From Macrostomum lignano (taxonomy: Eukaryota), in assembly GCA_002269645.1 (NCBI GenBank), contig NIVC01003166.1, positions 75,859-139,858 on the forward strand: DNA of 64,000 nt. Direction: 5' to 3'. The stretch's first letter is position 1, and each line of letters starts with the position of its first letter. Shown in pieces: positions 2,414 to 63,671 of the stretch. The notes below the pieces were generated by a model. The model did no database searches. It worked only from the letters and a program-made list of their open reading frames with translations, and was not told the origin of the DNA. Both the position numbers and the translations under genes were made by a program.

Positions 2414-3583
2414 GTCTTAGGATGTTTTCTTTTTGCATTGCACTTTATCTGAGTAGTTTTTCTATTGACTATGTGAAGGCTTTGTTTGGCCATCTTATTG
2501 ATACTTGTAGAGAACAGAGATTCTATCTAGATGTCCCCCATTGGGGGGCGAAGATTGCTAGTTTTTTACTAATTCTATATACTTGTCAAAATAGCCTCTT
2601 AGCTAAATTTTTAGCAAAAATATATTTGAATACTTTGCTAAATACTTTGTTGTATGGATACCAATCTATGCTTGGAAGTTGAATACTTAAAAAGAATTAT
2701 TTACTTGACACACACTTGTTATTTATACTTTCCTATACATCTATTGTTACCATACAAGGGATACTCCAAAAGTTTTGCAATTCAACCACTTGTGCAAGTC
2801 GCACATTTTTAAAAAATCAACCCTCTGTACAATAAACATGTATATAGTTCCCATCTCAATTTTCAAGTGAATTTATATATGCCTACACAGCCCCTAGTCA
2901 AAGTCAATGACTCCTAAAACGTATAGCTGCAGCCATGGAATTGAATCGTGAGCAAAATCAGCTACTAATTTGGTACTGCCACAAGCAAAAGCTTATGGCA
3001 CTTGAGACTCATGCCGAGCTACTGGCAACATTAGAGGCTCAAACGCTGTCATATGCTAGGCCTACTGTTCCACACTAGTATTATGAGTTTCAGGCTGGCA
3101 GTGGCAGGACTAGCTTTTCTGACAACCTCTGGCCTAGGAGACCTCCAACAGCAGTAACAGAGGAAAACATCGCTGTAGTGTAGGAGCTAATCTATCAGGA
3201 TCTGCAAATCACCATAGACATATTAGCTATGAATGTTGGCATTGGATTGGCAGTGGCCAATATGATTCTATATGATCACCTGAGAGTCAGAAAGCTTTGT
3301 GCCTGATGGATTCCCCACATCTTAACAGATGGTCAGAAACAGGCCCGCATGGAGTTCTGTCAGTTTCTCATCAATTGATATGAGTAGGAGAGCCATTAGT
3401 GCTACTCTAAAGTCATCACATTGGGGATGAGACATTTCTCTATCATTTTGACATCAAGACAAAGTGCAGCAGTGCAGAGTGGGTGCCAGAAGGTCGGCAA
3501 CAACCCCTGAAAGCAAGGTGGTCCCGGTCCTAGGGCAAGCAAATGTTTGCAATCTTCTTTGACTCACAAGGCATGTTGGCGAT

Positions 3584-3819
3584 CCTGATTGCAGCGCATG
3601 GGCATTTTGGCGGACAGCGAGCGGCGATTAGTACGGCGCGGCGCGGTACTAATTAGATGCCGAGGCATTTAGGCTTGATAAGACAGTCATAGTTACTGCT
3701 GCCGTTTACCCAAAACTGCGTTAATTTTGCTTTAGGGTTTCTTTTACAGGTAAGTCATTTCACAGCGTGGCGCAGGTTGTGTAGGCGTCTGGCGTACTTA
3801 AGCCATGCGCTGCAATAGG
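3584..3819. mobile_element. 236-bp MITE-like insertion nested in the mariner, with inverted termini and a 9-bp target-site duplication
   Basis: GTTGGCGAT at 3575-3583 and 3820-3828. Termini CCT(G)ATTGCAGCGCATGG / CCATGCGCTGCAATAGG share a 14-bp perfect core. Removing the insert and one TSD copy restores the transposase frame MFAIFFDSQGMLAMVKLEGQTIVT. Confidence 0.85.
3641..3711 (-). other. LSU (28S-like) rRNA domain IV fragment (helix 69-71 region) inside the MITE; not a functional rRNA gene
   Basis: The minus strand reads GGGTAAACGGCAGCAGTAACTATGACTGTCTTATCAAGCCTAAATGCCTCGGCATCTAATTAGTACCGCGC. The conserved eukaryotic 28S sequence, recalled from memory, is GGGTAAACGGCGGGAGTAACTATGACTCTCTTAAGGTAGCCAAATGCCTCGTCATCTAATTAGTGACGCGC. 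Confidence 0.8.
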
Positions 3820-5194
3820 GTTGGCGATGGTGAAGCTGGAGGGTCAAACTATAGTCACTGCTTGATGGTACACTGAAGAGTGCTTACCAGTCATGATCCA
3901 AAGGGCACCAGGGAAGGGAATGCAAGGGCAGAAGGAAGTATTTCAATGCTACCACACCTGCCCTATCTGCCCTATTCACCAGACCTTGCCCCTTGCGACT
4001 TCTGGCTCTTTCTAGAAATCAAAAAGTCCAATGAGAAGCTAGAGCTGGTGACAAAGGAGGCAATTGATAGCATCCCAATTGAAGAGATCCAGGGCCCTAT
4101 GACAAGTGGCTCAGATGAACGCACAAGCGTTTGTAGTTCCAAGGAGCCTACTTTGAAGGATTGTAATAGAAAAGTTTGGCTGAATTAACTTTAAATAGTT
4201 GATTTGCAAAACTTTTAGAGTATCCCTTATACATAATATGTATATATATTTATATATAATAATTTCTTAGACCTTTTTTCTAAGTCATTTGGTTGATAAT
4301 ATAGAGGCCTAACAAAAGACAAATTTAACAAACAATTAAGAAAAATATTTGTGAATACTTTTTTGATACTATATATCATAGACCTAATAATTTATATTAT
4401 TGCTTGGAGTATGAAGTGTCAAAATAAAAGTAGTAACAAATATTATTTTAATGAAATGAAATTTAAATATAACTAAATGCAATTATAAAGTGCATTATTT
4501 CATCAATAGAGAGGTTATATAGTATACCATTGATCATGATCTCAAATTCTTACTTACACTTATAATCCTAAGGAAAATTAGATTCCCATAAAATCAAGAT
4601 CTTGACCCTAGAAATAGGAATTTGGAATAGTTCTTTTAAGTGAACTTTTTACTAGTTTTTAGAATTAATGATTACTTGAATGCATTTCATTTTAACTTGT
4701 ACTTTTTATATTATTATTTTATTAGTCTTAAAAATTTGTATTTGTTATAATATATTTTACTTATTCTCTAGTAAGTGTAAATCTAAGTCTATATTATAGA
4801 CCTAAAAACTATAGTATACTAAAATACCTAATCCCAATAGCTATTTTTCCCTATAACTGCATCTTTGATAGTCATGTATGCATAGATTTGAAACAAGCAT
4901 CAATTGATCTCATTGGCTGGAATGCTATCTATTATTTCCTCTTTTTGCTCCTTTATTCTCTTCCTTCTTTTTCTGTCTTACATATAATCTTTCCTAGCAG
5001 TTTTCCTTTGTTCATTTTATTTTTGTACCTAATTTTTTAGCCTCAAGAGTAGTTTTTATATCTCTAGCTTTATATTCTTATTCTATACATACTACTGTTA
5101 GTACCTCTAATGATCATGTCTTATCTCTTGTCAAATTCCAAGTGCTAACTTTACTATGCCTTGGAGGTTGGCCCTCAAATGTGTTAATTGCATA

Positions 5195-5517: not shown

Positions 5518-8500
5518 ATGGGCTCAAATGTGAGCACCCTGTCTGAGCTAACAGGCCCAGTCAGAAATCCTCTACTTGAAAGATTCTGCTCAGCGGAGCC
5601 TCTGGTAGCTGTGGCTGACTTAGACGAGACTGAAGCTTTCTGGACAAATTTGTTAAGTCATCAGCTCTGTCCTCCCGTGACCTCTCGCGCCTCTCGCGAC
5701 TTTGACGAATCTCTAGCGCTGCCTTACCTGGCCCACCTGGCTGTCAACAATCGAACTAGCGGCAATCTCAATGCACTACTTCGGAGAATCATTAAACTGA
5801 CTGACGAGCTAGATGATGCTGTGCTGCAGCCGCTGGCTGATAGACAGCGCAGATCCCGGCATCTCAGCCAGCTGGGAGCTGCCCTGTTCATGGCCCGTTG
5901 TTGCATTAAATATCTGTTAGAATCGGAGAATGAGCGAAGCTTACTTGAGCACATGGAATTCTGTCCTGTTGAGGATGACAATCAGGTGATTTGCTTTGTT
6001 ATTGTGCAAACTGGCAGTCTGGTGTCTGTTTCAGATAAAATTGTCTGAAATTAAATCCTGTCAGCTATAAACATCCTACTGACAAGAAATCCTGTCAGCT
6101 ATAAACATCCTACTGACAAGAAATCCTGTCAGCTATAAACATCCTACTGACAAGAAATCCTGTCAGATATAAACATCCTACTGACAAGAAATCCTGTCAG
6201 CTATAGACATCCTACTGACAAGAAATCCTGTCAGATATAAACATCCTACTGACAAGAAATTCTGTCAGCTATAAACATCCTACTGACAGGAAATCCTGTC
6301 AGCTATAAACATCCTACTGACAAGAAATCCTGTCAGCTATAAACATCCTACTGACAAGAAATCCTGTCAGCTATAAACATCCTACTGACAAGAAATCCTG
6401 TCAGCTGTAGACATCCTACTGAAATCCTGTCAGCTATAAACATCCTACTGACAAGAAATCCTGTCAGCTATAAACATCCTACTGACAAGAAATCCTGTCA
6501 GCTATAAAACATCCTACTGACAAGAAATCCTGTCAGCTATAAGCATCCTACTGACAAGAAATCCTGTCAGCTATAGACATCCTACTGACAAGAAATCCTG
6601 TCAGCTATAGACATCCTACTGACAAGAAATCCTGTCAGCTATAGACATCCTACTGACAAGAAATCCTGTCAGCTATAGACATCTTACTGACAAGAAATCC
6701 TGTCAGCTATAGACATCCTACTGAACTGACAAGAAATCCTGTCAGCTGTAGACATCCTACTGACAAGAAATCCTGTCAGCTGTAGACATCCTACTGACAA
6801 GAAATCCTGTCAGCTATGGACATCCCACTAGACTAGAAAAACTCTCATCTAAAATCTTTACAGCGTCATAAATTAACCATCTCAAATTTTCGCAGGACAA
6901 TGACGACAACGCATCCGTCATTGAGAAGAAGTCGTCATCTTCTGACAGCTCGCCGGACGCCTCTCAAAACTCGTCAGACAATGAAGACAATGCCGAGTCA
7001 TCTTCTGCTGCACCGTCCTCGGTCGCTGCCGACTCTGGCACCACAATAGAAGATTACGTTGAAAGTTTAGTCAAATTAGTCATTCTTCTACCTGTTGATG
7101 AGGAAGCATTTCCTGCTCTTCTAGAAGCAATCAACAGCTTGCTAGTACTGCTGAGCCTGAGAATGTACCACGGCTGCAAGTCAAGTGCCCAGCTGGCATT
7201 CTACCAGATTCTCTGTACTGGCAGATGCGCACCTTATGCCAGAAGGTTGGCGGCCACTTTAGTGCAGCAGTTTGTGGCGGCGCCGCCAGCTCCTGATCGA
7301 TTGGTAGCTAGCGCGCCTCAAGCACCTTCTCAGGTAGATTATATAACAGGGGTATTCGTTCGGATAGTCTAATGTTTTGATTTCTCCGCTAAAGTGTTGC
7401 TCTGCGCTGATTGGCTGCTGTATATCTGTGTCTTTTTTAGCTGTGCGCTGATTGGCTGCTGTATATCTGTGTCTTTTGTAGCTGTGCGCTGATTGGCTGC
7501 TGTATATCTGTGTCTTTTGTAGCTGTGCTCTGATTGGCTGCTGTATATGTGTCTTTTGTAGCTGTGCTCTGATTGGCTGCTGTATATCTGTGTCTTTTGT
7601 AGCTGTGCGCTGATTGGCTGCTGTATATCTGTGTCTTTTGTAGCTGTGCGCTGATTGGCTGCTGTATATCTGTGTCTTTTGTAGCTGTGCGCTGATTGGC
7701 TGCTGTATATCTGTCTTTTGTAGCTGTGCGCTGATTGGCTGCTGTATATCTGTGTCTTTTGTAACTGTGCGCTGATTGGCTGCTGTATATGTGTCTTTTG
7801 TAGCTGTGCGCTGATTGGCTGCTGTATATCTGTGTCTTTTGTAACTGTGCGCTGATTGGCTGCTGTATATCTGTGTCTTTTGTAGCTGTGCGCTGATTGG
7901 CTGCTGTATATCTGTGTCTTTTGTAGCTGTGCGCTGATTGGCTGCTGTATATCTGTGTCTTTTGTAGCTGTGCGCTGATTGGCTGCTGTATATCTGTGTC
8001 TTTTGTAGCTGTGCGCTGATTGGCTGCTGTATATCTGTGTCTTTTGTAGCTGTGCGCTGATTGGCTGCTGTATATCTGTGTCTTTTGTAGCTGTGCGCTG
8101 ATTGGCTGCTGTATATATGTGTCTTTTGTAGCTGTGCGCTGATTGGCTGCTGTATATCTGTGTCTTTTGTAACTGTGCGCTGATTGGCTGTTGTATATCT
8201 GTGTCTTTTGTAGCTGTGCGCTGATTGGCTGCTGTATATCTGTGTCTTTTGTAGCTGTGCGCTGATTGGCTGCTGTATATCTGTGTCTTTTGTAACTGTG
8301 CGCTGATTGGCTGCTGTATATCTGTGTCTTTTGTAACTGTGCGCTGATTGACTGCCGCATCTGTCCCTCATGGTACTATCCAGAACTACTATCCAGAATG
8401 CATATTTTAGATATGCTTGAAATTATATACAAAGTTATTATTTACCTGAAATATTATACTCCAATTTATTAAGGTGTACAATGCGGCAGCGTCATTAGCA

Positions 8501-9582
8501 ACCGGTCTATGGTACATGGTGACTCTTGGATACGGAAGTGGCAGTGGTGGCACTTCAGCAGCTTCAACCGTTTCTAAAACAGATGAGCCGGTAAGATGAT
8601 AAGTCACGTGACTCAACACTGATTAAAATAAGTGATTAACTGTTTCCTCTAAATCTTTCCCATTCCCAGACTCGAGCTGAACTCAAACGCAATCTGTTGA
8701 GCCGACAGAGCCTGCTGCTCTGCCTCGCCCTCGCCCTCAGTCCCGGCTACTCTTCCAACGAAGACGAGTTGGACACGCCCTACCGTGACGCTCTGCTCGA
8801 ATGCGACGCCAAGTTGCTAGGGAACTATGCCGGTCTGCTAGGCGCCATAGCAACTAATTTGCCTCAAGATGAAGCTCTGCTGCTGCTCTACCTGCTGCTC
8901 CACCCGGCCGGTTCGCACGCCCTTAGGAACCACCTGGCTTCAGCTGGGGCCAATAATCCTCAACTGTTAGCCTCGCTAACTCTGCCACTGTTGCAGTGCA
9001 TTCACTCGGCTAACACTGAGCCGCAGTCGCATCGCCTGTACATGGCTATGATCAACTTGCTCATGCTCACTGAGCAGCCCGACCTGTGCAGGGCTATGCA
9101 CACCGCTCCCCTGCCTGGCGGGGCGTCGCCTGCTTGGCTAACGGAGAGACAGCTGGGTCCGCAGGGCACTCTGGGCAGCCTACTAGTAGTAGTGCTAGCC
9201 AGATGCGTGCAGCTCAATCTGCATAAACTGGGCAGAGGCGGCGGCGGTGGTTACCTGCCGAGCAACTGCATGGCAGCGCTGGCCAATCAGTCTACTCAGG
9301 CCAGATCGCTGCATCCTTACGCCTGTCAGAAGCTGCTGGGCCTGCTGACTCTCATTGCGACTCGGATTGAGAAGCTGGAGCAGCAGAAATCGGCAACGTA
9401 AGTAGACAGCTTGAATTATTGAATGAGCATGTAGCCGCTAGCTGATAGACACTGACTCAGGCAGACAGGCAGACAGACAGACAGACATGCAGACAGACAG
9501 ACAGACAGACAGACATGCAGACAGACAGATAGACAGGAAGGCAGACAGACAGACAGACAGGCAGACAGACAGACAGACATGC

Positions 9583-9634
<52 letters not shown>

Positions 9635-9672
9635 CGACAGACAGGCAGAGAGACAGACTGACAGACACACAC

Positions 9673-9707
<35 letters not shown>

Positions 9708-9709
9708 GG

Positions 9710-9740
<31 letters not shown>

Positions 9741-9954
9741 GAAGGCAGGCAGGCAGGCAGGCAGACAGACAGACAGACATGCAGACAGACGGACATGCAG
9801 ACAGACATCCAGACAGATAGACAGACAGACAGACAGACAGGCAGACAGGCAGACAGACAGGCAGACAGACATCCAGACAGACAGACAGACAGACAGACAG
9901 GCAGACAGGCAGGCAGACAGGCAGACAGACAGGCAGACAGACAGACAGACATGC

Positions 9955-9987
<33 letters not shown>

Positions 9988-9994
9988 GCCAGAC

Positions 9995-10029
<35 letters not shown>

Positions 10030-10316
10030 GGCATGCAGACAGACAGATAGACAGACAGACAGACAGGCAGACAGACAGGCAGACAGACAGGCAGACATGC
10101 AGACAGGCAGACATGCAGACAGACGGACATGCAGACAGACATCCAGACAGACAGACAGATAGACAGACAGACAGACAGACAGGCAGACAGGCAGACAGAC
10201 AGGCAGACAGACATCCAGACAGACAGACAGACAGACAGGCAGACAGGCAGACAGACAGGCAGACAGACAGACAGACATGCAGACAGACAGACAGACAGAC
10301 AGACAGACAGCCAGAC

Positions 10317-10366
<50 letters not shown>

Positions 10367-10404
10367 CGACAGACAGGCAGAGAGACAGACTGACAGACAC
10401 ACAC

Positions 10405-10455
<51 letters not shown>

Positions 10456-10457
10456 GG

Positions 10458-10488
<31 letters not shown>

Positions 10489-10714
10489 GAAGGCAGGCAG
10501 GCAGGCAGGCAGACAGACAGACAGACAGACAGACATGCAGACAGACGGACATGCAGACAGACATCCAGACAGACAGACAGATAGACAGACAGACAGACAG
10601 ACAGGCAGACAGGCAGACAGACAGGCAGACAGACATCCAGACAGACAGACAGACAGACAGGCAGACAGGCAGGCAGACAGGCAGACAGACAGGCAGACAG
10701 ACAGACAGACATGC

Positions 10715-10747
<33 letters not shown>

Positions 10748-10750
10748 GCC

Positions 10751-10810
<60 letters not shown>

Positions 10811-10824
10811 TGACAGACACACAC

Positions 10825-10867
<43 letters not shown>

Positions 10868-10869
10868 GG

Positions 10870-10900
<31 letters not shown>

Positions 10901-10990
10901 GAAGGCAGGCAGGCAGGCAGGCAGACAGACAGACAGACAGGCAGACAGGCAGGCAGACAGACAGACAGGCAGACAGACAGGCAGACAGGC

Positions 10991-11027
<37 letters not shown>

Positions 11028-12825
11028 GGAAGGCAGGCAGGCAGACAGACAGACAGACAGACAGACAGGCAGGCAGACAGACAGGCAGACAGACAGACAG
11101 ACTGGCAGACAGACAGACAGACAGACAGACACAGACGGACAGGCCGCACCCCTCCCCAGCCCGCAGCAGTCCCCAAACGAGCTGGCAGCCCTAGAGGCGG
11201 CCAGCCGCAGCATCCTGGAGGTGGTTAACGGCACCCTGAGCCGGGTGAGCCTGGCCGCTAACCCGCACCTGGTGTACACCATGCTGCACCAGCGAGCCGC
11301 TCTGTTCAACAAGCGACTGCTGCAGAACCGCACAGAGCTGGCTGAGCTGGCGGCAAACCTGCTGACGGTGTCGCAGCACTTCGCCGCCGCTGTGGCGAGA
11401 GACTCGGCGGCCGGGTCAGCGGCAGCTCAGCAGCAGCAGCAGGCGGCGGATGGTGGCGAACTTGCCGCCCTGCCGCCGCCTTCGCAACTGTCCGAGGCTC
11501 GGATTATGCAGGTGAGAGGGAGAGCTCTGGTTTATTATGATGATGTGGGCACTCAAAAGTCGGTGGATTATGTTCAGGCTTTATGTTTCGGTATTGCATT
11601 TTACGATCCCTCCTCTAATTGGCGTCGGTCAGTGTAATTAGTCACTGAGTTGAATTTTAGTCTGGGAAATCTTAGTTGTTGATACCGATATCCTAATTAG
11701 GAAAAAAACTCACGCTAGAGAAATCCCAGTTAAAGCAAACCCCAGTAATGGAAATCACAGCTAGGAAAATCCCAGTTAGGGAAATGTCGTTTAGAAGAAC
11801 CACAGTTAAGGAAATCAGTTTTTTAATGAAATCCCGGATAGGTAACTTATAGTTAGGAAATTCCCGTTATGGATTTCCCAGTTAGGGAAATCCCAGTCAG
11901 GGAAACCCCAGTTATAGATATCCCAGTTAGGGAAACCCCATTGTTGTAAATTTCAGATTCGTAACTCCCAGTCAGGGAAATCCCATTGTTGTAAATCTCA
12001 GATAGGTAACTCCCAATACGAAAATTCTCGTTATGGAAATCCCAGTTCTGGAAATTACAGTTAGGGAAATCCCAATCAGGGAAATCCCAGTTAGGGAAAT
12101 CCCAGTTAGGGAAATCCCAGTTAGGGAAATCCCAGTTAGGGAAATCCCAGTTAGTGAAATCCCATTGTAAATTTCAGATTCGTAACTCCCAGTTAGGGAA
12201 ATCGCAGTTAGGGAAATTCCAATTAGGTAAATCCTTTTAGGGAAATTCCATTCAGAGAAACCCATCTAAAGAAATCATATTTAAGGAAATCCCAGTTAGA
12301 AAAATCCTTTTTAGGGGAATCATATTTGTAACAGTTCCAGTTGTTTGCGACATTTGAAATTATTGATAAAAAAGCATGGGTGCAAATGCTAGCTTAAAAC
12401 CTTGCTTCAATCGCCTCACCAATTCGCAGGTAATCTCCTCAAGCTGCGCCAGCTTCAAACGCGAACGACTCCGCCAGTTCCCGGAGCCACGATTTAAATA
12501 CGTTGAAGAGGCCAAGCCGGACGATTTTTTTGTGCCTTACATCTGGGCTCTGGTCTACAAGCACTCGGGACTGTACTTTAACCCCGCTAGAATCACCTTA
12601 TTGAAGCCGGCGGCGTCTGCTGCTTCTGCTTCCGCGTCTGCTTCCGCGTCTGCTTCCGCGCCTGCTTCCGCGCCTGCTTCTGCGTCTGCTTCCGCGTCTG
12701 CTTCTGCGTCTGCTTCCGCCGCCCGGTCTGGGACAGCAGCAACAACAGCAGTAGCAAAAGCAGCCAAAGCCGCCACTTCCGCCTCAGTTGTTGCTTCCGC
12801 TCCAATGGAAACCACTGTTGTTTAA
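5518..12825 (+). CDS. DYM: Dymeclin, 6 exons, 832 aa, reading frame intact
   Basis: Exons 5518-5985, 6896-7333, 8474-8590, 8670-9397, 11160-11511, 12430-12825; all GT-AG with compatible phases, summing to 2499 nt. Dymeclin hallmarks: myristoylation-type start MGSN, FWxxLLS, NNxxSGNLxAL, ASLATGLW, NPHLVYxxL, and FPEPRFKYVEEAKPDDFFVPYIWALVY. Confidence 0.93.
6053..6828. repeat. 34-bp minisatellite (CTGACAAGAAATCCTGTCAGCTATAAACATCCTA) in DYM intron 1
   Basis: Period 34 (6061/6095); each unit has a CTGACA...TGTCAG inverted repeat. Confidence 0.96.
7400..8362. repeat. 41-bp minisatellite (GCTGTGCGCTGATTGGCTGCTGTATATCTGTGTCTTTTGTA) in DYM intron 2
   Basis: Period 41 (7441/7482); accounts for the minus-strand repetitive ORFs at 7259-8371. 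Confidence 0.96.
9440..11141. repeat. (GACA)n compound microsatellite in DYM intron 4
   Basis: About 1.7 kb of GACA/GGCA units; source of the long QTDR and LSVC pseudo-ORFs. Confidence 0.97.
11720..12320. repeat. Degenerate 15-bp minisatellite (GGGAAATCCCAGTTA) in DYM intron 5
   Basis: Near-perfect units at about 12060-12165, degenerate flanks. Confidence 0.9.
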
Positions 12826-14169: not shown

Positions 14170-14995
14170 TGTAGGTTGTTATTGCAGTTTCCGATTATCT
14201 ATTGTCGATTGTAATGCATTGTGAGTTGTTGGTTTTGTCCATTGGGAGTTGTGGCTTTTGTGGATTGTGAGTTGCTGGTTTTGTCCATTGGGAAATGTGG
14301 CTTTTGTGGATTGTGAGTTGTGGGTTTTGTCCATTGGGAGTTGTGGCTTTTGTGGATTGTGAGTTGCTGGTTTTGTCCATTGGGAGTTGTGGCTTTTGTG
14401 GATTGTGAGTTGCGGGTTTTGTCCATTGGGAGTTGTGGCTTTTGTGGATTGTGAGTTGTTGGTTTTGTCCATTGGGAGTTGTGGCTTTTGTGGATTTTAA
14501 GTTGTGGGTTTTGAGGATTTTAAGTTGTGGGTTTTGAGGATTGTGAGTTGTGGGTTTTGAGGATTGGGAGTTGTGGGTTTTGAGGTTTGGGAGTTGTGGG
14601 TTTTGTGGTTTGGGAGTTGTGGGTTTTGAGGTTTGGGAGTTGTGGGTTTTGTGGATTGTGAGTTGTGGGTTTTGTGGTTTGGGAGTTGTGGGTTTTGTCC
14701 ATTGGGAGTTGTTGGTTTTGTCCATTGGGAGTTGTGGCTTTTGTGGATTGTGAGTTGTTGGTTTTGTCCATTGGGAGTTGTGACTTTTGTGGATTTTGAG
14801 TTGTGGGTTTTGAGGATTGGGAGTTGTGGGTTTTGAGGTTTGGGAGTTGTGGGTTTTGTGGTTTGGGAGTTGTGGGTTTTGAGGTTTGGGAGTTGTGGGT
14901 TTTGAGGTTTGGGAGTTGTGGGTTTTGAGGTTTGGGAGTTGTGGGTTTTGTGGTTTGGGAGTTGTGGGTTTTGTGGTTTGGGAGTTGTGGATTCG
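14170..14995. repeat. 23-bp G/T-rich minisatellite (GGGAGTTGTGGGTTTTGAGGTTT and variants)
   Basis: Direct reading; accounts for ORFs at 14179-15016. Confidence 0.93.
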
Positions 14996-15344
14996 TGGAA
15001 TTTGAGAACTTAACAATCAAATTTGTTTTACTATGAAATGTTTCAATGGTTTCAATTTGTGCCTTAGCCTCCATTTTTGATCCAAAATAAAGCATTAACA
15101 AAGTTTTCACGGTTTTCTTGTTGCAAAAATTACCTAACATTATTCTTTTTGCCTCATTAGATTTAGCGAATTCACCTTCGGACATTAACGACTTTTGTTG
15201 AAGTTTTCAATTTTTATTCTGAAATTTCGCACCTGAAAAAAATAAATAAACTGTTTAATTGCTGACCAGCAGCGTCGCTTCTGTTGAAGCCGTTTCATTT
15301 TTTCGTATGAAAAACTGTGGGTTTTTTTGCTTTTTATTGCTACA

Positions 15345-15995
15345 GGTTAGGGTCAGGTTTGGGTTAGATTAGGGTAGGGTTTAAGGCATTTTAGGTTCAG
15401 GGTTAAGGTCAGGTTTGTTTTAGGGTTTAGGTCTGGTTAGGTTTAGGGTTTAGGTCAGGTTAGGTTTAGGGTTTAGATCAGATTAGGTTTATGGTTTAGG
15501 TCAAATAATGTTTCGGGTTTAGGAAAGGTTAGGTTTAGGGTTTAGGTTAGGTTTAGGGTTTAGGTTAGGTTAGGTTTAGGGTTTAGGGTCTAGCTCAGGT
15601 AAGGCTTAGGGTTTAGGTCAGGTTAGGTTTATGGTTTAGGTCAGGTTAGGTTTAGAGTTTAGGTCTGCTTAGGTTTAGGGTTTAGGTCAGGTTAGGTTTA
15701 GGGTTTAGGTCAGGTTAGGTTTAGGGTTTCGGCCTGGTTAGGTTTAGGGTTTAGGTCAGGTTAGGTTTACGGCTTAGGTCAGGTTAGGTTTAGGGTTTAG
15801 GTCAGGTTAGGTTTAGGGTTTAGGTCAGGTTAGGTTTGGGGTGTAGGTCAGGTTAGGTTTAGGGTTTAGGTCAGGTTAGGTTTAGGGTTTAGGTCAGGTT
15901 AGGTTTAGGGTTTAAGTCAGGTTAGGTTTACGGCTTAGGTCAGGTTAGGTTTAGGGTTTAGGTCAGGTTAGGTTTAGGGTTTAGGTCAGGTTAGA
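15345..15995. repeat. Telomere-like 23-bp repeat (GGTTTAGGGTTTAGGTCAGGTTA), interstitial
   Basis: Built from TTTAGGG, TTAGG and TCAGG sub-motifs; the 5' part is degenerate. Confidence 0.9.
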
Positions 15996-17610
15996 GTTTG
16001 CATTGAATTAGTACGCACTTGAAGTCTTGGCTAGCAAAGGTCGCAGCCCCAACCAAAATATTCATGTAGTGCAGTCCCAGAGCAACTACTTTTTCAGGCA
16101 TGAGGTGCTTGGGTGAGTATCTGTATTCCCTTGGCCCTAATTAATTATTAACTGGTTTGTTAGATTAGATATATAGAGTGGCCCACTTCGTGGATATTGT
16201 TCGCCTTTATCTAAGGCACTAATGCATTATGGATAGTAGTTAGTGCCAGTGGTGGGTAGGCGTGACAGACAAGACAGCTCTTGCTGCTTTTGTTTTTGGT
16301 TGTTTAGCCTTCTTCTGACAGCTTTGCAGTTACTTCTGCTGGGCGGGCGGCTTCTCGGTCTGGTGCGAGATGTAATGCTGTAAAGCATTAGTGGCGCATG
16401 CTGAATTCCCTGCTGCTATTTTTCTGCTGTCGTGGGCTGAATTTGTTTTCATCTCGTCAGCCTGAAATATCCCGCAGTTTGCCATCCGTCCCTGTCTCTG
16501 CGTTTGCCCTCCGACTTGCTTTTTGCGTGTAATCTGTTTTCCCTTCTAGTTCCCTCTTCTCACTGCCTGCTCTTCCTCTCAACCTTCTCCACCTTTTCAC
16601 CCTCTACCCTCCCACATCTCTACCCTTTCCCTATCTACCTTCTCCTCTCTCTGCCAATCTTGTCTCCACCGTCTCCCCTCTAGCCTCTCCTTTACTTTCT
16701 TCCCTCAACCTTGACCCTTCAAGCCTAATCCTCTACCATCTTATCTCTACTTCCCGGCCCCTATCTACTGTCTATTCTTTCATCGCTCTCGCTCTTCCTA
16801 ATTCTTTCATTTTCCAGCCTGTCTCATTTTTAATTATGCATTGTATCAGTCTGTTGAAGCAATTGCAGAATCTCTTGATCCATTTATAAGTCACGGCTGC
16901 ATCAGATATTCAACAGGCTTATTTATTGCCCAAGTCGCATCGGGACAAGCAGCTTACGTATCTTGTATCCTTACGAATTTAGTCCCGCATTTTCTCAATT
17001 TCTCAGTTCGTGACGATTTTGTAGCAGAGGGCCCCGGATACTGTTCCCCGATTGCGCTCTCAACGGCTCTCGAGGATTAGATGACTCTCCCCGACTGTTA
17101 ATGGAGCAAGGCTTATTTTATGCTCGGCAAGAAGTTTATAATTGCGCAGTCACGAGAGAAGCATTTTAAGTGCCTAAATATACACAGCAAAGAGAAGATC
17201 GGCTCAGTACTAATGCATTAGGCTGCGACCCCATTAATATTCAGTCAAGAATTGTGCGCGCGCGCGCGCTTCAGATTCGCATGGGTGAAGCGCGATCTTA
17301 ATCTCTTTCTGTATTCCCTATTTGCACACGGAATCCACCATGCGCTGGACTGAGCCGAAGACTCCCCGAGTCAATAACTGGAGTACTTGTAGCAACTCAC
17401 TCACCAAAATGCATTTCTGCGGATCATCTCTTAGTTAGAAGATACTTATAGTCAGGCGAGGGGCTGTGTGCACCCTGGCGTACTTTAAGCGACATTGTCA
17501 CACAATCGGTGAGAGGGATTACTGCCCATTCTGCCGACTCCCCTGAGCAGGCATACAAGCTATGCACAATCGCACACTTACACTTACGGCCCTAACGTTA
17601 AACAACACGA

Positions 17611-38000: not shown

Positions 38001-41000
38001 TAGCAGGTCGTTAGCGCATCTAAATACGGCTGGACCCACATGAAGTGGTACACCTCGTCGCGAATTATTTCACTGCCAGTGTGCAGCACCACCTGCACAA
38101 GCATGTACAGTTCAGTGAGCAGTCCGGTAGCATTGTTATGATGAATGTCAGCAACAGTAGAAATATTGTGCAGGCGCCTCTGCGTCTGCTGGCGATTACG
38201 CGTCTTTGACCGCAAACCGGACGCAGGATGCGTCGAAATATAAGGGCCAAGAAAGTGCTGATTAGTAGCAAGCCAATCGCTGTGACAACAGTCTGCGTAG
38301 CATACCCGAAATATCTCGACATGTGCATCAGTATTGTGCCATTCGATTGAGGCTGCGCTGGAGAACGTGGCGTAGAAATTGATAGCAGGTCATTGCCATG
38401 CAGCGGCACTGGTGGCAGCGGCGGGATGGTCACGGGAGTCCAATTATTCCGCGTAGATGACGAGTCACGCGAACGTGGCAGGTACAACGGCGCCGAGATT
38501 TCCACGTAATTTGATGGAAGTGGCGGCAGGGTTATGTAGTTTACCAGCTTCCAATTCTGCGGCGTGAATTTCAGAGGCGTTGCAAGTCCCGCTGATGTGT
38601 TGGAATGTTTTGTTACAAGTAGTTTGTCAATGTTACACTGGGCTCGCGCCTCTTGTACACTGTTTTCAGACTTGGCTAGTTTTACTAAAAACGACAATGC
38701 GCCAAGAAAGATGCCCAAAATCCAGTTGCTAGCGATGGTTACACTGGTAATTGGTCGCGAGTGGATCTGATACTGCAGGGAATGGTTCACTGTCAGGTAC
38801 AAATCCAGGCTCAAGCTGCACAGGCCGAGTGTAATCAGGATGGTACCGCTTATCCTGATGTCTTCCACTAGCATGTCTGTCCATTTATAGCAGAACATGT
38901 TCGTTGCTGGCCTGTAGACAGCGGCTAGTAGACTTATCACGACGCCTATAGCTGCTACGAGATTCGCTGCCGTGATGCTTACTAACAATCGCGCTCGGTT
39001 GGTGAGCTTTCGTTTGCCCCAGCTGCACAGCGCTACCATGGTGATCGAGTTGATGATCAGGCCATCACTGTGGCCACTAGTTCGATGATTTTGTCCTTTG
39101 TTAGCAGCATGGTCAGCCGATCTGAAACGAAGCAACATTATAAAAAGTACTAGTATCGCCTTGCAAGTGATGTTTTTGAAGCTCATTAGCGACTGACTGG
39201 GGCGATTTTGGCGTCACTCCTCGTAATCCCTTGTTGCACATTTTTGTCTTGCTTTATTCCTCGCTTCCCATCCCTTCGGCAAGGATAGGGAAAGGGAAAA
39301 CGCGAGTGGGTGGGCTGTCACGCGACATGGCCGGAAGTTCGACGCAGCTGTCACCGCAGTGGGAAACTTCTCCCCCGCCTCAATTTGTAGAGGGATACAC
39401 ACGACATTTCCAAAGCCAGATTTTTATTTCCACAATTCGTTCAAGATTCTGGACACGTGGGCGGTCCTGCTATGAAGGGTATCGCTGAATTATCATTTGT
39501 TATACTTTGTTCCTAATAAATTGCCTTGTTTAGTTCGAACCCGGCAAAGTATTTCCTTTCTCTTTTCTACCCCTTTTTAACTGACCTTTAAAAAGCCTCG
39601 GAACTCGGAATTCTTCAAAAGTTCAATTGGAACTTTTAGAAATTGGAAAAAGAAATGGTATTCGAACTTTCCTATGCACTATCGGAAAAGAATTGCTTTC
39701 AGCTCAAGATTCTGAGTCGGTGGACTATCTAAAAGATATAATTTCCGTTGATCTGCTTTGCACATCCTGCCATGCCGTCCTCTGGGGAATCTCTCGGTCC
39801 TCGATTTTTCTGCCTCTAACTGTATCAATATTGGGTCGCTACCAGCACGGATAAAGAAGGAATTTCGCATGAAATCATAGCCGTAGCTTACCCAGTGATA
39901 AAGAAGTCGCTATCGCGTTAATAAAAGCGCCACTTTTTAGTGTTTTCTTCGAAAACAATTGTGGAAATTTCTTTGCTGCAAGCGAACCTTGACTTGACTT
40001 GCCAGCAACTTTATACGGCCTTGTTATATAGCTTGGCAGTCGCTATTGGATGGCATATTTTTGCCAATATTTCTACCGGCTCGGCTACCGACCAATAGCT
40101 AAAGTAGTCATGCCTCTGATTTCGGCTTTTCTACGCCAGCCTGTCTTATCTTGTTTTCGAATTCTGAGTATCGAATCGAATCGTTCATTATTATCTTCTT
40201 GATGCAGTCAGTCCTGGTCCGGTATTGTTATTTTTTCTCATTTAGCCTATCGCTTGTCTGTCTGTCTTTTCTTTGTGTCTAAATGCCTGCCTGCTTGTCT
40301 GTCTGTCTGTCTAAAAGTACAACAGTGCGATGTTCTAACAAATTATATAACTTTTAGTCCATGTATTCGTCTCCGGAAAAAATTGCTAATTATACTAAAT
40401 GAATTTTCTGTCCAAATCACCCAGGCGAGCGGCTCCCGTTTCGACGAAATTACCAAAATAACTGTGGCTTTGCGGTTGCAGCAGCAGCCTGTCTGTCTGC
40501 TCGTCAAAGCAGATGCTTGTTCCAAGCTAATTTGCTTTTGTGCGTTGCAATTCCGATTCAGAATACTGTAGGTTTAGAGATTAGCATGGAGCCTATTTGT
40601 TGGCTACTGGGTCCTATGATGTACTTTTATGTCCATCTGCTCTGGTCACGGTCAGTAGATTATCATATTAGCTCGCCAGAGACATATGGATCCGCATTGA
40701 TATAATACTGTGTGCCATCATGCTTACCAATTTATTTTATTTGGCTATCTTTTATACCCGAAATTGAACTGTATCTGCGGGATTGATGAACTGAGGCGTG
40801 ACAGCTGCGGCAGTTGCCAGGTGATCTGTTGCTGAAATATTTAATAAAAAGGCCAGACTGTTGAGTTCAGCCGGACTATATAGAGAATTCTAGAAAAAAA
40901 TGTGCTAACTTGGACTTTTGGGAGACGGTGTGGTCCTATAACGGAATATGAGGCTGTGCGATGCGGGGAAAAAGGGCCGATGTACACCATGTTTGAGCGT

Positions 41001-56550: not shown

Positions 56551-59500
56551 ATGAAGCTCATTCTTCTGCTGCTGTGCACTATATTAGAAGTTCCGCTTGC
56601 CATGACCGTCCACATCCAGTTCATGGCAGTCGAACTGCGCAGCATCTCGACTCCAGCTGCCATGGAGTCGGCGCCAGGACTCGGCAGGATGAAGTGCGCC
56701 GAGCTCTGCTCTGTGAGGCCCGCCTGCTTCGGCTTCAGCTGGCTGCAGGGTCTGTGCCGGCTCTTTGACTGGCTGGCGTTCAGCAGCACGGATGGCTGGC
56801 AGTTCTCGGAGTCATGCGATGTGTACGCCAGGATTGACGGTAAGACGGCATGCACCCAGTATTAAGAAATTTACTAATTTACTTTTACGATTTCATATTG
56901 TTGATGTAACCGCCCTTGTCGCCTGTCCGCTCCTATTGAGAGACGAACGCTTGGCTAGAGGGGGCAATGACCGTAGGCTGCCTATGACCGGGCAACGACC
57001 TGACGGACCTCCAGCACCAGACTGTCCCGCCCACATGATTAGTAGCTTTGGTAGCGCTTCGTGACCAGAGGGCCAAGGACCCACATGGACCCCACCTGTA
57101 GCCAAGGTGCATTAGTTGGTCACTCGGTCATGATATGACCGAGTGGCTGCCACCACTCTATGTGACCTGGCGCACCTGGATCTTTCTACCAGACCTCTCG
57201 AGGCTAGAGCCCCGCCTGGATTGGTTACCAGGGGATTTAGGCTAACAGGGGAGACACATGCAGCCGAGTACAGGGACTCTGCTTGGGGCATGATCGGGAA
57301 CTCTGGGCTCAATCCTGGAGGATTTCTCAGCAGGGGATCCTTTGTGGCTGTGAGCGAGGCTGACTTGCGACTTTGATTACTAAAAGTAGTATGAGTCGAA
57401 CATATACTGTCTATAGTTTAGATTGCTCAGGGCGAAGGGACGCGTTAGCATGGGGTTGCAACCTTCCTACTGCCATTCTGTGCCAAGACTCGCTAATCCA
57501 TCGACTGCACGCACACGCGGCCCCGCAGCACGCACTCACAGGCGGGCGTTGCACGGGGAGAGGCCATTAGCTTACCCAGACTTCCTTATGCTTTGCCACC
57601 CCGGGAGAAAGGCTTAGCAAGCCATGAGTTAAATGATGGTGAAAGATTGAATAATGATGGAGTTAGTTAATAGTTAATAATTAGGCCCTTAGGCGAACAA
57701 TTAGGCAATTAGGCGGCTTCACTATTGAGTAAAATACAGCAAGAGATACGGTATCACAATTGGCTCAGCTCTCTAATCAGACAAAGGGAAATAGGCAAAC
57801 CCCGGATAAGCAAAGGCAATTAGAGCACAAATTAGTAACAGGAACTTACCGGCAGCTGCACAGAGAGAGAGAGAGGCGTAGTGACCGGTGGCGGCTGTAG
57901 GCTGCAGTCAGGCAGACAGTGAAGCGGCGATGCGCTGGAGCGACGAGGCGCTGATGTAGATCAGGCGATGCTGATGATGCTGGGCGGGATCAGACCGCTG
58001 GCCGATAGGCGAGCTCACTTGGGGAGCTAAGGATAACTTGGCGGTAACAGACCGCGGACCGGCAGGGATTCGCCTTATAGACGAATAGGTCAGAACTCAG
58101 TCTGACAACAAGTCCCGGAAAGGGGGAAACGAAGAAAGTGTGAGGATTCTCATGCCGAAATCGCTTCCTTTTTTAGAACTCACAGCCGCCTCCTCAAGGT
58201 CGTTACCATGGCTCCCTCTCTCTGATTGGCTGCCGGCAAAATGACGTCAGAATGAGTCATGATGAGAAGCATGAGACCGGCATAGCAACATGAGAAATCG
58301 GGAAATTGCGCAATCCGGAGGTGGGGTGGGGGGGATAATTGGCGCAGCGAAGGGGTCGCGAAAGTGTTGCGCAAGCAAACATTGAGAACAATAGGGCTGG
58401 GGTCGAGAACAAAGGAATTGGAAAACGGGGATAATTGGGGAGAACTAAGAACAATGGAAAAGTAAACATTGGGGAAAAGGTGATAATTAGGTGCGAAAAC
58501 GAGAACAAAAGAAAGAGAAAATCGGAGAAAATGTGATAATTGGTGGGGGTCGAGAGAACAAAAGAATCAAAAACGAGAACAATAGAAGCGGAGGTGGGGT
58601 GGGTGTCGCATGAGAAATTTGGGAAGGAGAACAATAGCGTGAGAAAAGGTTGCGCAAGAGAGGGGGATGAGTCATCGATGAGTCATCGGGAGGAAGAAGG
58701 GGTCACACGACTTGCGTCACCGTTTGGGAGTTTGGGAGGGGATGGGGAGACGGTGAGCACACAAAATACTGTAAGTAGACACAGGGAAAGAGGGGACAGC
58801 GCAGGAAAAGAGTGCAGAGGCAGACAAAAAGAGGGGAGATAGGGAAAGTACAGGAAGAATAGGGCGGAAAACAGAAGAGATAGGGTAGAGGGGGAGGTAC
58901 AGAAAGAGGTAGGGGGCTCCGGAAAGGCAGGTGTGGCGGCAGGGGAGACGGGACCAAGGCAGCAGGGGGGTGCAGCAGAGCGGGAGTCTCCAGGCCCGGT
59001 CGGAGACCTGGCCGAGTCTCGACAGCTCTGCGCAGAGGGTGCACGGGATAGGAGGCACTTTCGAAAAAGTTCCCATGCCCTATCCCGCGACCAGAGCGTC
59101 GTTACATCATTGTGCAATATTGCTTCAGCTTCAGATGGAAAGCTTGTGGAACAGGTACTTTGACCGCAAATAATTTCCAGACTCGCAGCCGCCTACTCAG
59201 CTAAAACTCGAAAGCTGCTCGCAGAGTTCAACGTACGGGTCGAACGTTTGCGGACGAGCAATTGACGGAAACCGGAACCAAAAATACGGTGCAGGCTCCT
59301 GCGCTCACACCGGAATAAAGCCGTTCGAATGGTGGGAGGGGCAGCTGGCCGCTCCATCGCTTGTCTCTTACGTCACCATCTACAACAGGCAGGACTGCTG
59401 CGCTGAGCGACTCAACAAATTCTCGCTGCAGGTGGACGGCGTCGAGTGCAACCGAGTGAGCCTGACGGTGCCGTTCTCCGTGGCCAACTTCAGCTGCAAC

Positions 59501-59581
59501 GCCTTCGGCAGCCGAGTTCGGGTGACAAACCTGCTCAGCGAGTACCTTACCATTTGCGAGATCGAGGCTTACAGGCTGTAG
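56551..59581 (+). CDS. Secreted PAN/apple-like + F-type lectin (fucolectin) protein, copy 1, intact, 229 aa
   Basis: Exons 56551-56839 and 59181-59581 (phase 1, 690 nt). Signal peptide MKLILLLLC; PAN-like CAELC...CFGF...CRLF; F-type lectin domain with QSS, AIDGN, the fucose-binding signature H-X26-R-Q-D-CCAE-R, and ICEIEAY. Confidence 0.85.
56902..59109. mobile_element. 2.2-kb probable solo LTR (Gypsy-like) in the intron of lectin copy 1
   Basis: Ends TGATGTAAC (56902) and GTTACATCA (59109) form a 9-bp inverted repeat with TG...CA; 4-bp TSD TTGT at 56898-56901 and 59110-59113. Absent from the homologous introns of copies 2 and 3. Confidence 0.78.
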
Positions 59582-60287
59582 CTGAGCTGGTGGTTGCGAG
59601 TGGCCTCGGCAACCTCGACTGCAACTGCAGAATGGAACTGAAAGCAGTGAATTTGAGAAACTGAACTGCTGCAATGAAAACCGGAGCAATCAATAAAACT
59701 TTCAGTCTTCTGTAGGAACCTTCAAGCATTCGAAAATGAATATGTCTTGCGGCTTGGAAGTTTCGATTTTTGTTGCTTTACGTATGGGACCTCAGAAAGC
59801 AGTTGGCTAGTCATGACTTATTTTAGATGAAAAAAGCACAGACAATTTATAAATAGTTGGAAGTCCTTAGTCCCAAGGTTCTGTGTGAACATAGCGACAA
59901 CAAGCCTACACACGGCTGTCACAGTTAATATTTACAGTTAAAATCTTGCTAGGTTTTGCCTAAAAGCTGAGACATCGAAATTGTGTACACATTTGATGTT
60001 TCCAGCATCAAGATATTTTTCGCGCGGCTTGTTTACACAGCAAAACAGCCCGCCAATCACACTCACTAGCTTTGTATCTTCCTTCATTGTTGATGAGAAA
60101 ACTAACGGCTATGCTTCCACAGGCAAAGTCGAAATGAAGCAAGCGGTTTCTCCAGTCTGGAAAAGCGAAATATAGTGTCAATAATCAATAAAGTTGTCGC
60201 TCCTTGCGGAAAAGTCTAAGCTCTATAAATCAACCGTTTGCTTCCGCTGAAACACTGACAAGCTGGCACTAGCTTCTGCTAGCTAAG

Positions 60288-62519: not shown

Positions 62520-63336
62520 ATGGGCCAAGAACGCCTACTTTTACTGCTAATTCTCTTTGCGATCGCAGTTTCTGTTGTCATGGCGACGCCGATGGTGTAC
62601 TCGGCAGTTCGAATGCACAGCATCTCGACTCCAGCTGCCATGGAGTCGGCGCCAGGACTCGGCAGGATGAAGTGAGGCCCGCCTGCTTCGGCTTCAGCTG
62701 GCTGCAGGGTCTGTGCCGACTCTTTGACTGGCTGGCGTTCAGCAGCACGGATGGCTGGCAGGTCTCGGAGTCATGCGATGTGTACACCAGGATGGTCGGT
62801 AAGACGGCATACACCTTGTGTTGAGAATTTGACTAATTCACTCTGTGCGAATTCATGGTGTGCATTATTCATATTGCTTAACTTTTTAAAGGTGGCAGTC
62901 GTGGAACAGGTATTTTGACCGCAAATAATTTCCAGACCAGCCCGCCAACTCAGCTAAAACTCGAAAGCTGCTCGTAGAGCTCAACGTCTTGGTTGGCGTT
63001 TGTGAACGAGCAATTGACAGAAACAGGAACCAAAACTACCGTGCAGGCTCCTGCGCCCACACCAGAAAAAATCTGTTCGAATGGTGGGAGGGGCAGCTGG
63101 CCGCTCCATCGCTTGTCTCTTACGTCACCATCTACAACAGGCAGGACTGCTGCGCTGAGCGGCTCAACAAATTCTCGCTGCAGGTGGACGGCGTCGAGTG
63201 CAACCGAGTGAGCCTGACGGTGCCGTTCTCCGTAGCCAACTTCAGCTGCAACGCCTTCGGCAGCCGAGTTCGGGTGACAAACCTGCTCAACGAGTACCTG
63301 GCATCTGCGAGATCGAGGCTTACAGGCTGTAGCTGA
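62520..63336 (+). pseudogene. PAN + F-type lectin copy 3 (pseudogene)
   Basis: Exons 62520-62798 and 62936-63336. A 19-bp deletion between GTG microhomologies creates a TGA stop after GRMK; DG is changed to DR; there is a late frameshift in exon 2. Confidence 0.82.
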
Positions 63337-63671
63337 GCTGGTGGTTGCGAGTGGCCTCGAAACCTCGACTGCAACTGCAGAATGGAACTGCGGCAGTGAA
63401 TTTGAGAAACTGAACTGCTGCAATGAAAACCGGAGCAATCAATAAAACTTTAAGTCTTTGTGACTGAAGGAACCTTTAAGCATTCGAAAATGGATATGTC
63501 TTGCGGCTTGGAAGTTTCGATTTTTGTTGTTTTACGTATGGGACCTCAGAAAGCAATCATGAATCAGTGTAGATGATTGCGATTTCATTCAGAATGCTGA
63601 TTAATCGGGCTTCTCTGAGTCAGGATTTTTTGAGATGTCATCTTGATTAAGTAATAAAGTAGTTTTTTATT

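Follow-up and report, generated by a model that had tools for sequence, protein, structure and literature searches.

A 236-bp insertion in Macrostomum lignano DNA, here called e1 (positions 3584–3819 of the window, the whole 64,000-nt stretch that was analysed), and a second element of the same species, e2, have a stretch of large-subunit rRNA gene in common: the same module of 28S origin, with derived mutations that include the scrambled R2/I-PpoI site, is present in at least two mobile elements. We consider it probable that both are Pack-MULE-like miniature elements containing a captured, decaying 28S fragment. This account is built on the two copies examined, e1 and e2.

Across 3575–3828 the layout of e1 and its borders is GTTGGCGAT, CCTGATTGCAGCGCATGG ... 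CCATGCGCTGCAATAGG, GTTGGCGAT. The 9-bp target site duplication GTTGGCGAT that had been claimed in an earlier, sequence-only reading of this DNA was found by mechanical repeat detection on both sides, at 3575–3583 and at 3820–3828. Inverted-repeat detection gave a left terminal inverted repeat CCTGATTGCAGCGCATGG at 3584–3601 (plus strand) and a right one at 3803–3819, which reads CCTATTGCAGCGCATGG on the minus strand. They include the perfect 14-base inverted termini of the same reading, ATTGCAGCGCATGG at 3588–3601 and its exact complement at 3803–3816; the outermost tips, CCTG and CCT-, are one indel apart. An alternative, equally valid parse consists of an 8-bp repeat, TTGGCGAT, and ungapped 18-bp termini with two mismatches. 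By analytic calculation, ~0.01 or fewer combinations of target duplication and termini of this quality are expected by chance per 64 kb. Stops are present in all six reading frames, so e1 has no coding capacity, and both DNA comparison and a profile of the module yielded one copy within the window. Terminal inverted repeats and a target duplication with a demonstrable empty site, as in MITEs, characterize e1 and likewise e2, and both are non-coding and below the ~800 bp of such elements (236 bp and 295 bp, respectively).

The element sits in a decayed mariner copy at 2755–4229 (plus strand), which was recognized by a 39-nt terminal inverted repeat (87% complementary), by Pfam Transposase_1 and by protein and DNA identities. 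This host element is flanked by TA at both ends (2753–2754 and 4230–4231), measures ~1230 bp minus the insert and is full of stops and frameshifts. With the insert in place, the Transposase_1 match reaches 20.1 bits over profile positions 3–43 and ends exactly at the junction; after deletion of the insert and one repeat it reaches 27.1 bits over positions 3–61 and runs uninterrupted across the site. The match is thus broken by the insert and restored on its removal, in agreement with the proposal of a clean insertion into a mariner transposase. The reconstructed mariner protein is 67% identical to M. lignano PAA64652.1, the locus of which lies on contig NIVC01001731.1 of assembly GCA_002269645.1 within a 21-kb stretch that we call L005. 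At the DNA level the host mariner and the L005 mariner are 84.6% identical, and L005 and the window have two satellite families in common. In all four further mariner copies, that of L005 and three copies without interruption (L006, L007 and L008), the e1 target is present as one GGTGGCGAT. Both GTTGGCGAT copies have a T at position 2 that is peculiar to the mariner copy of the window, which shows that e1 inserted after decay of this mariner had begun.

The window as a whole consists of GC-rich exons alternating with minisatellites, and the architecture of L005 is alike. A dymeclin gene at 5518–12560 (plus strand) has introns made up almost wholly of tandem arrays with periods of 34, 41, 4 and 15 bp, the period-4 array being 1.7 kb of CAGA; the best matches of its exons are metazoan dymeclins with up to 38% identity. 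G-rich 23-bp arrays were observed at 14218–15999, and an interstitial telomere-like array (CAGGTTAGGTTTAGGGTTTAGGT, with TTAGGG/TTAGGT variants) at 15343–15999. Paralogous exon copies with an F5/8 type C, F-type-lectin-like domain are found ~3.7 kb apart at 59228–59689 and 62950–63438 (Pfam PF22633 at 62989–63336, E = 7e-10), and the pair looks like a local tandem duplication. Furthermore, an intronless 373-aa ORF at 38065–39186 (minus strand) has a rhodopsin-type 7tm_1 match of 26.3 bits, below the cut-off; this exact GPCR-like protein is not on record, and its relatives among 1.84 billion representative proteins are at most 28–29% identical.

The interior of e1 contains a module resembling domain IV of 28S rRNA, roughly helices 68–70, at 3641–3756 on the minus strand, which was delimited with Rfam, blastn, alignment and a profile. 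In a permissive search, Rfam LSU_rRNA_eukarya (RF02543) matched this interval with 29.8 bits and E = 2e-5 at model positions 2200–2314 of 3401. The minus-strand 28S match that had been noticed beforehand is confirmed by this E-value, but its score stays under the gathering score of 50. No Rfam family attains its gathering score in the whole window, and inside e1 the permissive search detected no family other than LSU. Identity is highest in a core at 3641–3711, which is ~85% identical to the Rfam consensus and includes the perfect blocks GGGUAAACGGC, AGUAACUAUGACU, AAAUGCCUCG and CAUCUAAUUAGU. The stretch that e1 has in common with e2 (3646–3756) coincides with the Rfam match, which argues that the whole module is an rDNA-derived unit, its upstream half included; the apparent divergence of this half may be due in part to variation of H68 between taxa. 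A profile made from the modules of e1 and e2 matches true LSU genes, namely four archaeal ones (L001–L004), and so provides an independent confirmation of the LSU homology. Beyond these borders the resemblance ends. A weaker upstream match, CTGCGCCACGCTGTGAAATGAC at 3757–3778, which had also been proposed, does not differ from shuffles (p = 0.67) and lies outside the common module, and an extension on the downstream side (CTGTCC) gave p = 0.95 against shuffles; the 28S reference in these extension tests was provisional and provides only a lead; the core is covered by the Rfam consensus. Neither element has the properties of an LSU gene: both score below 50 bits, UUAAGGUAGC is scrambled, and H69 and H70 are not intact.

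The second element, e2, occupies 295 bp inside the L005 mariner (L005:10551–10845). It has perfect 13-bp termini (ATACATGCGCAAC/GTTGCGCATGTAT) that differ from those of e1 and a target duplication of 10 bp, GAAGGTGGTC, which is single in L006–L008 and in the window mariner. With single GAAGGTGGTC and single GGTGGCGAT in other mariner copies, empty sites are documented for both elements. Their insertion sites are ~90 bp apart within mariner; the distinct sites and the two empty sites establish that e1 and e2 inserted independently. According to blastn, the elements have only a central part of 111 bp in common (window 3646–3756 = L005:10654–10763), which is 90% identical. As e2 has its own repeat and insertion site and bears the same 28S-like module, the module of e1 is not the single orphan copy that would have spoken against the sequence-only reading. 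Both elements reside in one mariner family, where they are oriented alike with respect to the transposase, and the sole M. lignano mariner locus retrieved by protein match (L005) happened to contain a module-bearing element. This coincidence may point to a preference for such targets or to very many copies.

Outside the module we found no significant similarity between the flanks and termini of e1 and e2, the best candidate being TTTGGCGG.CA with p = 0.07. A sequence search located the termini of either element neither at the other locus nor in the rest of the window, and one copy has been seen per type of end: what e1 and e2 have in common is the module, not the termini. A module that is 90% conserved between ends that cannot be aligned is unusual for simple descent and could reflect module exchange or selection. 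In the case of exchange, unrelated MITE families would have taken an already decayed 28S-like piece from some third sequence (for instance an rDNA orphon or pseudogene, or another repeat) or would have swapped it by template switching. The sharp boundaries of the module, which coincide with the rRNA match, agree with such shuffling, as does the contrast between module and flanks. However, both elements made duplications of 9–10 bp, some weak subterminal resemblances exist (the TTTGGCGG.CA match and, by eye, AAGTC(G)CAT-like repeats), and the module profile revealed no third source and no further module copy in the 85 kb of Macrostomum-type DNA examined. We therefore regard shuffling as rather unlikely, if still worth considering beside capture followed by divergence of the ends. 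In e2 the subterminal motif AAGTCGCA occurs at 10614, 10759 and 10805, with the one-mismatch variant ACGTCGCA close by, and a further motif, GGCCGACCGA, at 10586 and 10814. These repeats could be candidate transposase-binding sites; e1 has loose versions only.

The order of mutations can be read from the two modules with rRNA as outgroup. Derived features common to e1 and e2 are G>A at the first base of H69, C>G on the 3′ side of H69 and GA>AC on the 3′ side of H70. In addition, both have a scrambled R2 block, CUUAU(C/A)AAGCC plus one extra base. In e1 this R2/I-PpoI/Pokey target block (3671–3682, minus strand, from the Rfam alignment) reads CUUAUCAAGCCU where 28S rRNA has CUUAAGGUAGCC; it is the most altered part of the module, just as had been stated for the R2 site. 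The block of e2, CUUAUAAAGCCA, shows a nearly identical scramble, and neither element preserves UUAAGGUAGC, which is conserved universally in rRNA. Because the scrambles are nearly the same, they must be older than the split between e1 and e2, and from the common derived features it follows that the fragment had drifted ~12% from 28S before the lineages separated.

The position of the scramble invites another explanation. DNA transposons aimed at this site exist, for example Pokey (PMC10946416), and the fragment spans the R2/I-PpoI/Pokey target, which is the most altered block in both copies. The elements might accordingly be remnants of an rDNA-targeting transposon, in which ends located near the R2/Pokey hot spot mobilised rDNA and the scrambled site is a scar of insertion or excision. 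This would be difficult to reconcile with the distance of 40–55 bp between the rRNA-like part and either terminus, with repeats of 9–10 bp that are not TTAA, and with the location of both known insertions, which are in mariner copies and not in rDNA, with no rDNA nearby. We consider such an origin very unlikely and favor a captured fragment that was scrambled early.

The module was also compared with the paired regions of the rRNA model. The H69-like hairpin of e1 (3682–3700, minus strand), AGCAGU-AACUAUG-ACUGUC, forms a C-G pair in place of the G-C of rRNA and contains a basal A.C mismatch. The H70-like hairpin (3644–3662, minus strand), CGGCA-UCUAAUUA-GUACCG, has one U-A pair replaced by G-C and one pair broken (C.A). 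Among the 31 model pairs, 15 are unchanged in e1, 4 carry a substitution on one side, 5 carry substitutions on both, and the other 7 are broken. Three of the five two-side changes fall in the upstream part, which is rich in A/U and poorly aligned and in which the alignment was fitted to the structure; the reliable ones are G-C to C-G in H69, the compensatory swap already described in the sequence-only reading, and a second swap, U-A to G-C, in H70. In H69 and H70 together, 3 of 13 pairs are broken in e1, and more are broken in e2. The 71-nt core contains four changes specific to e1, two of which (G>C on the 5′ side of H69 and U>G on the 5′ side of H70) restore pairs. Two or more restorations have a probability of P = 0.016 under random substitution (post hoc, from two sequences and an inferred ancestor), and at least two compensated pairs among seven substitutions, with 26 paired positions, one of P = 0.03 (also post hoc). 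The pair-restoring changes themselves are real; at post hoc p values of about 0.02–0.03 they are suggestive, weak evidence for maintenance of the stems. Since they are specific to e1, they arose after capture and were not inherited from a divergent rRNA.

In e2 the pair corresponding to the H69 swap is G.G and that in H70 is U.C. The 3′ strand of H70 is lost, the H70 loop carries two further changes and the sequence past UUAGUAC is missing; the LSU score of e2 is 12.2 bits (E = 1.3). The covariation that had been held against simple neutral decay is thus present as two pair-restoring changes in e1, but three pairs of its stems are still broken and e2 shows no sign of maintenance. Folding of full-length e1 gave z-scores against shuffles of −2.05 and −3.14, which result from pairing of the termini with each other. 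The interior showed no excess stability over shuffles (z = +1.0 for the rRNA-sense strand, −0.48 for the other strand). A mobile structured rRNA mimic, one of the earlier proposals, thus finds no support: besides this lack of excess stability, 7 of the 31 model pairs are disrupted, UUAAGGUAGC is destroyed and both stems of e2 are broken.

More generally, the module could be kept by selection, as an H69–H70 mimic RNA, as an RNA from the other strand that would be antisense to 28S with perfect blocks of 10–13 nt, or as a DNA feature that aids spreading. It is better conserved than the ends of the elements, and one module recurs in two different elements; the two restored pairs of the e1 lineage point in the same direction. 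These statistics are post hoc and come from two sequences, however, and an RNA under selection would hardly be expected to lack excess folding stability, to lose the functionally universal UUAAGGUAGC in both elements and to tolerate the broken stems and changed H70 loop of e2. Nor does e1 contain any Rfam family but LSU. On balance we judge selection on the module to be unlikely and prefer decay of a captured piece.

The H69 swap also bears on the source of the fragment. A scan of metagenome contigs matched four archaeal LSU genes only (its pattern included an e1-specific base, so that e2-like copies would be missed). Their H69, GGCAGU/ACUGUC, makes them the only real rRNAs found with GCAGU/ACUGU in this helix and indicates that a ribosome with this variant can function. 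A divergent or foreign rRNA with already compensated stems, from a symbiont, a parasite, an organelle or a paralogous functional rDNA, might on this basis have supplied the module. Yet the archaeal genes lack the eukaryote-type downstream sequence AAAUGCCUCG.CAUCUAAUUAGU that is present in the module and are therefore not its source, and among the models of the LSU clan it is the eukaryotic nuclear one that fits the module best. Moreover, the 5′-side changes are specific to e1 relative to the rRNA outgroup, so the compensation postdates the module, and a scrambled UUAAGGUAGC is incompatible with a working ribosome. The suggestion of a symbiont or organelle origin in the sequence-only reading consequently finds no backing, and we regard any foreign source as extremely improbable compared with nuclear 28S rDNA.

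Near the edge of the module lies the internal hairpin ATTAGTAC-N11-GTACTAAT that had been noted at the outset. By inverted-repeat detection and alignment of e1 with e2 it proved to extend to a near-perfect palindrome at 3627–3653, with 13-nt arms (3627–3639 and 3641–3653) that contain one mismatch and enclose a loop of 1 nt. The end of the 28S-like module forms the right arm, and the left arm is an inverted duplicate of it that is missing from e2. Presumably the fragment was duplicated at its edge by a snap-back event.

Target duplications of 9–10 bp are in the range typical of Mutator-like elements (MULEs). The repeats of e1 (9 bp, also parsable at 8 bp) and e2 (10 bp) are within the ~9–11 bp of this superfamily, to which, judging by these lengths only, both elements likely belong. 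Classical MULEs have long terminal inverted repeats, often over 100 bp though not universally, and those of e1 (14–18 bp) and e2 (13 bp) are short; the 64-kb window contains no MURA-type transposase ORF. Elements of the hAT superfamily make 8-bp duplications with a weak nTnnnnAn consensus and have YARNG termini. The 8-bp parse TTGGCGAT of e1 fits nTnnnnAn, yet its termini begin with CC and the repeat of the related e2 has 10 bp. An interior consisting of a captured host gene fragment, as in Pack-MULEs, is present in the form of the 28S-like module. In the earlier proposal of a Pack-MULE or MITE that captured rRNA, the insertion with terminal repeats and target duplication and the occurrence of the module in a second element thus hold, but the Mutator assignment remains one by repeat lengths.

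Taken together, e1 would be a non-autonomous cut-and-paste MITE, most likely mobilised in trans by a transposase of the Mutator-like type with duplications of 9–10 bp, which inserted into an already decaying mariner copy of a Macrostomum-type flatworm genome. About 110 of its 236 bp descend from nuclear 28S rDNA (domain IV, helices 68–70), probably as captured or filler DNA acquired by Pack-MULE-type capture or by template switching in gap repair. Drift of ~12% and the scrambling of the R2/I-PpoI site came first, followed by the split into e1 and the differently ended e2. The insertion, the empty sites, the homology to rRNA, the common module and the sequence of mutations are demonstrated by the data, and the superfamily, the way of capture and the neutrality of the module are deduced. 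Later, inverted copying of the 3′ edge of the fragment in the e1 lineage would have created the palindrome at 3627–3653. Movement would require the termini only, and the rRNA-like module would be presumably neutral passenger DNA without demonstrated function.

Searches for relatives in wider collections returned little. DNA-pattern scans detected no related e1 copies in a viral contig collection and no match in prokaryotic genome contigs. A phage-like contig (L009) was discarded, as it matched by a chance 20-mer only, showed no similarity beyond it and did not reach the gathering score of any Rfam family. The six-frame translation of e1 had no match at E ≤ 1 among 5.8 billion proteins, and the terminal and core sequences of e1 were not found in a literature search.

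Several known systems resemble these elements in part. Pack-MULEs are non-autonomous Mutator-like elements with captured host gene fragments (Jiang et al. 2004, as presented in PMC10946416). The elements described here correspond to them in having terminal inverted repeats, a 9–10-bp duplication, no transposase gene and an interior of host fragment, and in that the captured piece is common to related elements; they differ in their termini of 13–18 bp, in their flatworm instead of plant host and in the capture of rRNA instead of protein-coding sequence. SINE28, according to the account of Longo et al. (2015, PMC4994717), is a mammalian SINE from the 3′ end of 28S rDNA that is transcribed by Pol III and retroposed. 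It is likewise a mobile element whose body derives from a large-subunit rRNA gene. In contrast, e1 contains domain IV (H68–H70), terminal inverted repeats and a target duplication of fixed length, and no poly(A) tail; the terminal repeats and fixed-length duplications indicate that elements of the e1 type move by cut-and-paste, unlike SINE28. The Pokey/mPok piggyBac elements of Daphnia (PMC10946416, PMC4912750) are DNA transposons and MITEs tied to rDNA as well; Pokey uses TTAA sites, contains internal IGS repeats and targets the same 28S region. Here, however, 28S coding sequence takes the place of IGS repeats, and the elements occupy mariner sites with duplications of 9–10 bp. Finally, central domains (CORE, Deu, V and others) are common to different SINE families (PMC4758252), and e1 and e2 similarly have one internal module between different ends. 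Those domains belong to retroposons, are of unknown origin and cross phyla, whereas the present module is found in two elements of DNA-transposon type in one genus and has an identifiable 28S origin.

A further parallel concerns introners, a kind of intron-generating DNA transposon (Gozashti et al. 2022, PMC9860276, a paper without mention of flatworms). In the annotation of the PAA64652.1 mariner gene, the 305 nt at L005:10545–10849, which consist of e2 and one copy of its repeat, form a GT-AG intron, and their removal yields the 353-aa protein exactly. The sole GT..AG choice for e2 uses the duplicated GAAG/GTGGTC, with both splice sites included. As known from annotation and sequence, the insertion of e2 resembles an introner in its geometry, that of a precisely removable GT-AG intron. 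The case of e1 differs, as GT-AG splicing would be off by one base and leave +1 nt. The annotated intron of e2 may also have arisen artificially, if transcripts of mariner copies that lack an insertion were mapped to this locus. A broader idea is that a core domain derived from 28S H68–H70 is common to several flatworm DNA-transposon families and under selection, possibly with a preference for mariner and with AG/GT targets that are spliced as new introns; we think it quite improbable and retain the capture of a decaying fragment as our preferred explanation.

Transposable-element modules derived from rDNA that are known from a 2024 review comprise SINEs with 5S promoters, the TRIMs Cassandra and Ajax, SINE28 and the IGS repeats of Pokey (PMC10946416, Table 2). 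SINE28 is the only 28S case in that table, which contains no cut-and-paste element with a fragment of 28S coding sequence. A terminal-inverted-repeat element with a 28S domain IV fragment is an addition to this list of modest novelty, as the process, capture of fragments by non-autonomous DNA transposons, is known.

With e1 and e2, a 28S fragment travels in two differently ended elements in a flatworm that is used as a model of regeneration and of the germline. Copies of the module can be mis-annotated as rDNA fragments, as "LSU-rRNA" repeats or as introns and can confuse the mapping of rDNA; e2, for one, already figures in the annotation as a mariner intron. If structure-preserving evolution were to prove true across many copies, the module would represent a rare case of an rRNA-derived core that DNA transposons maintain under selection.
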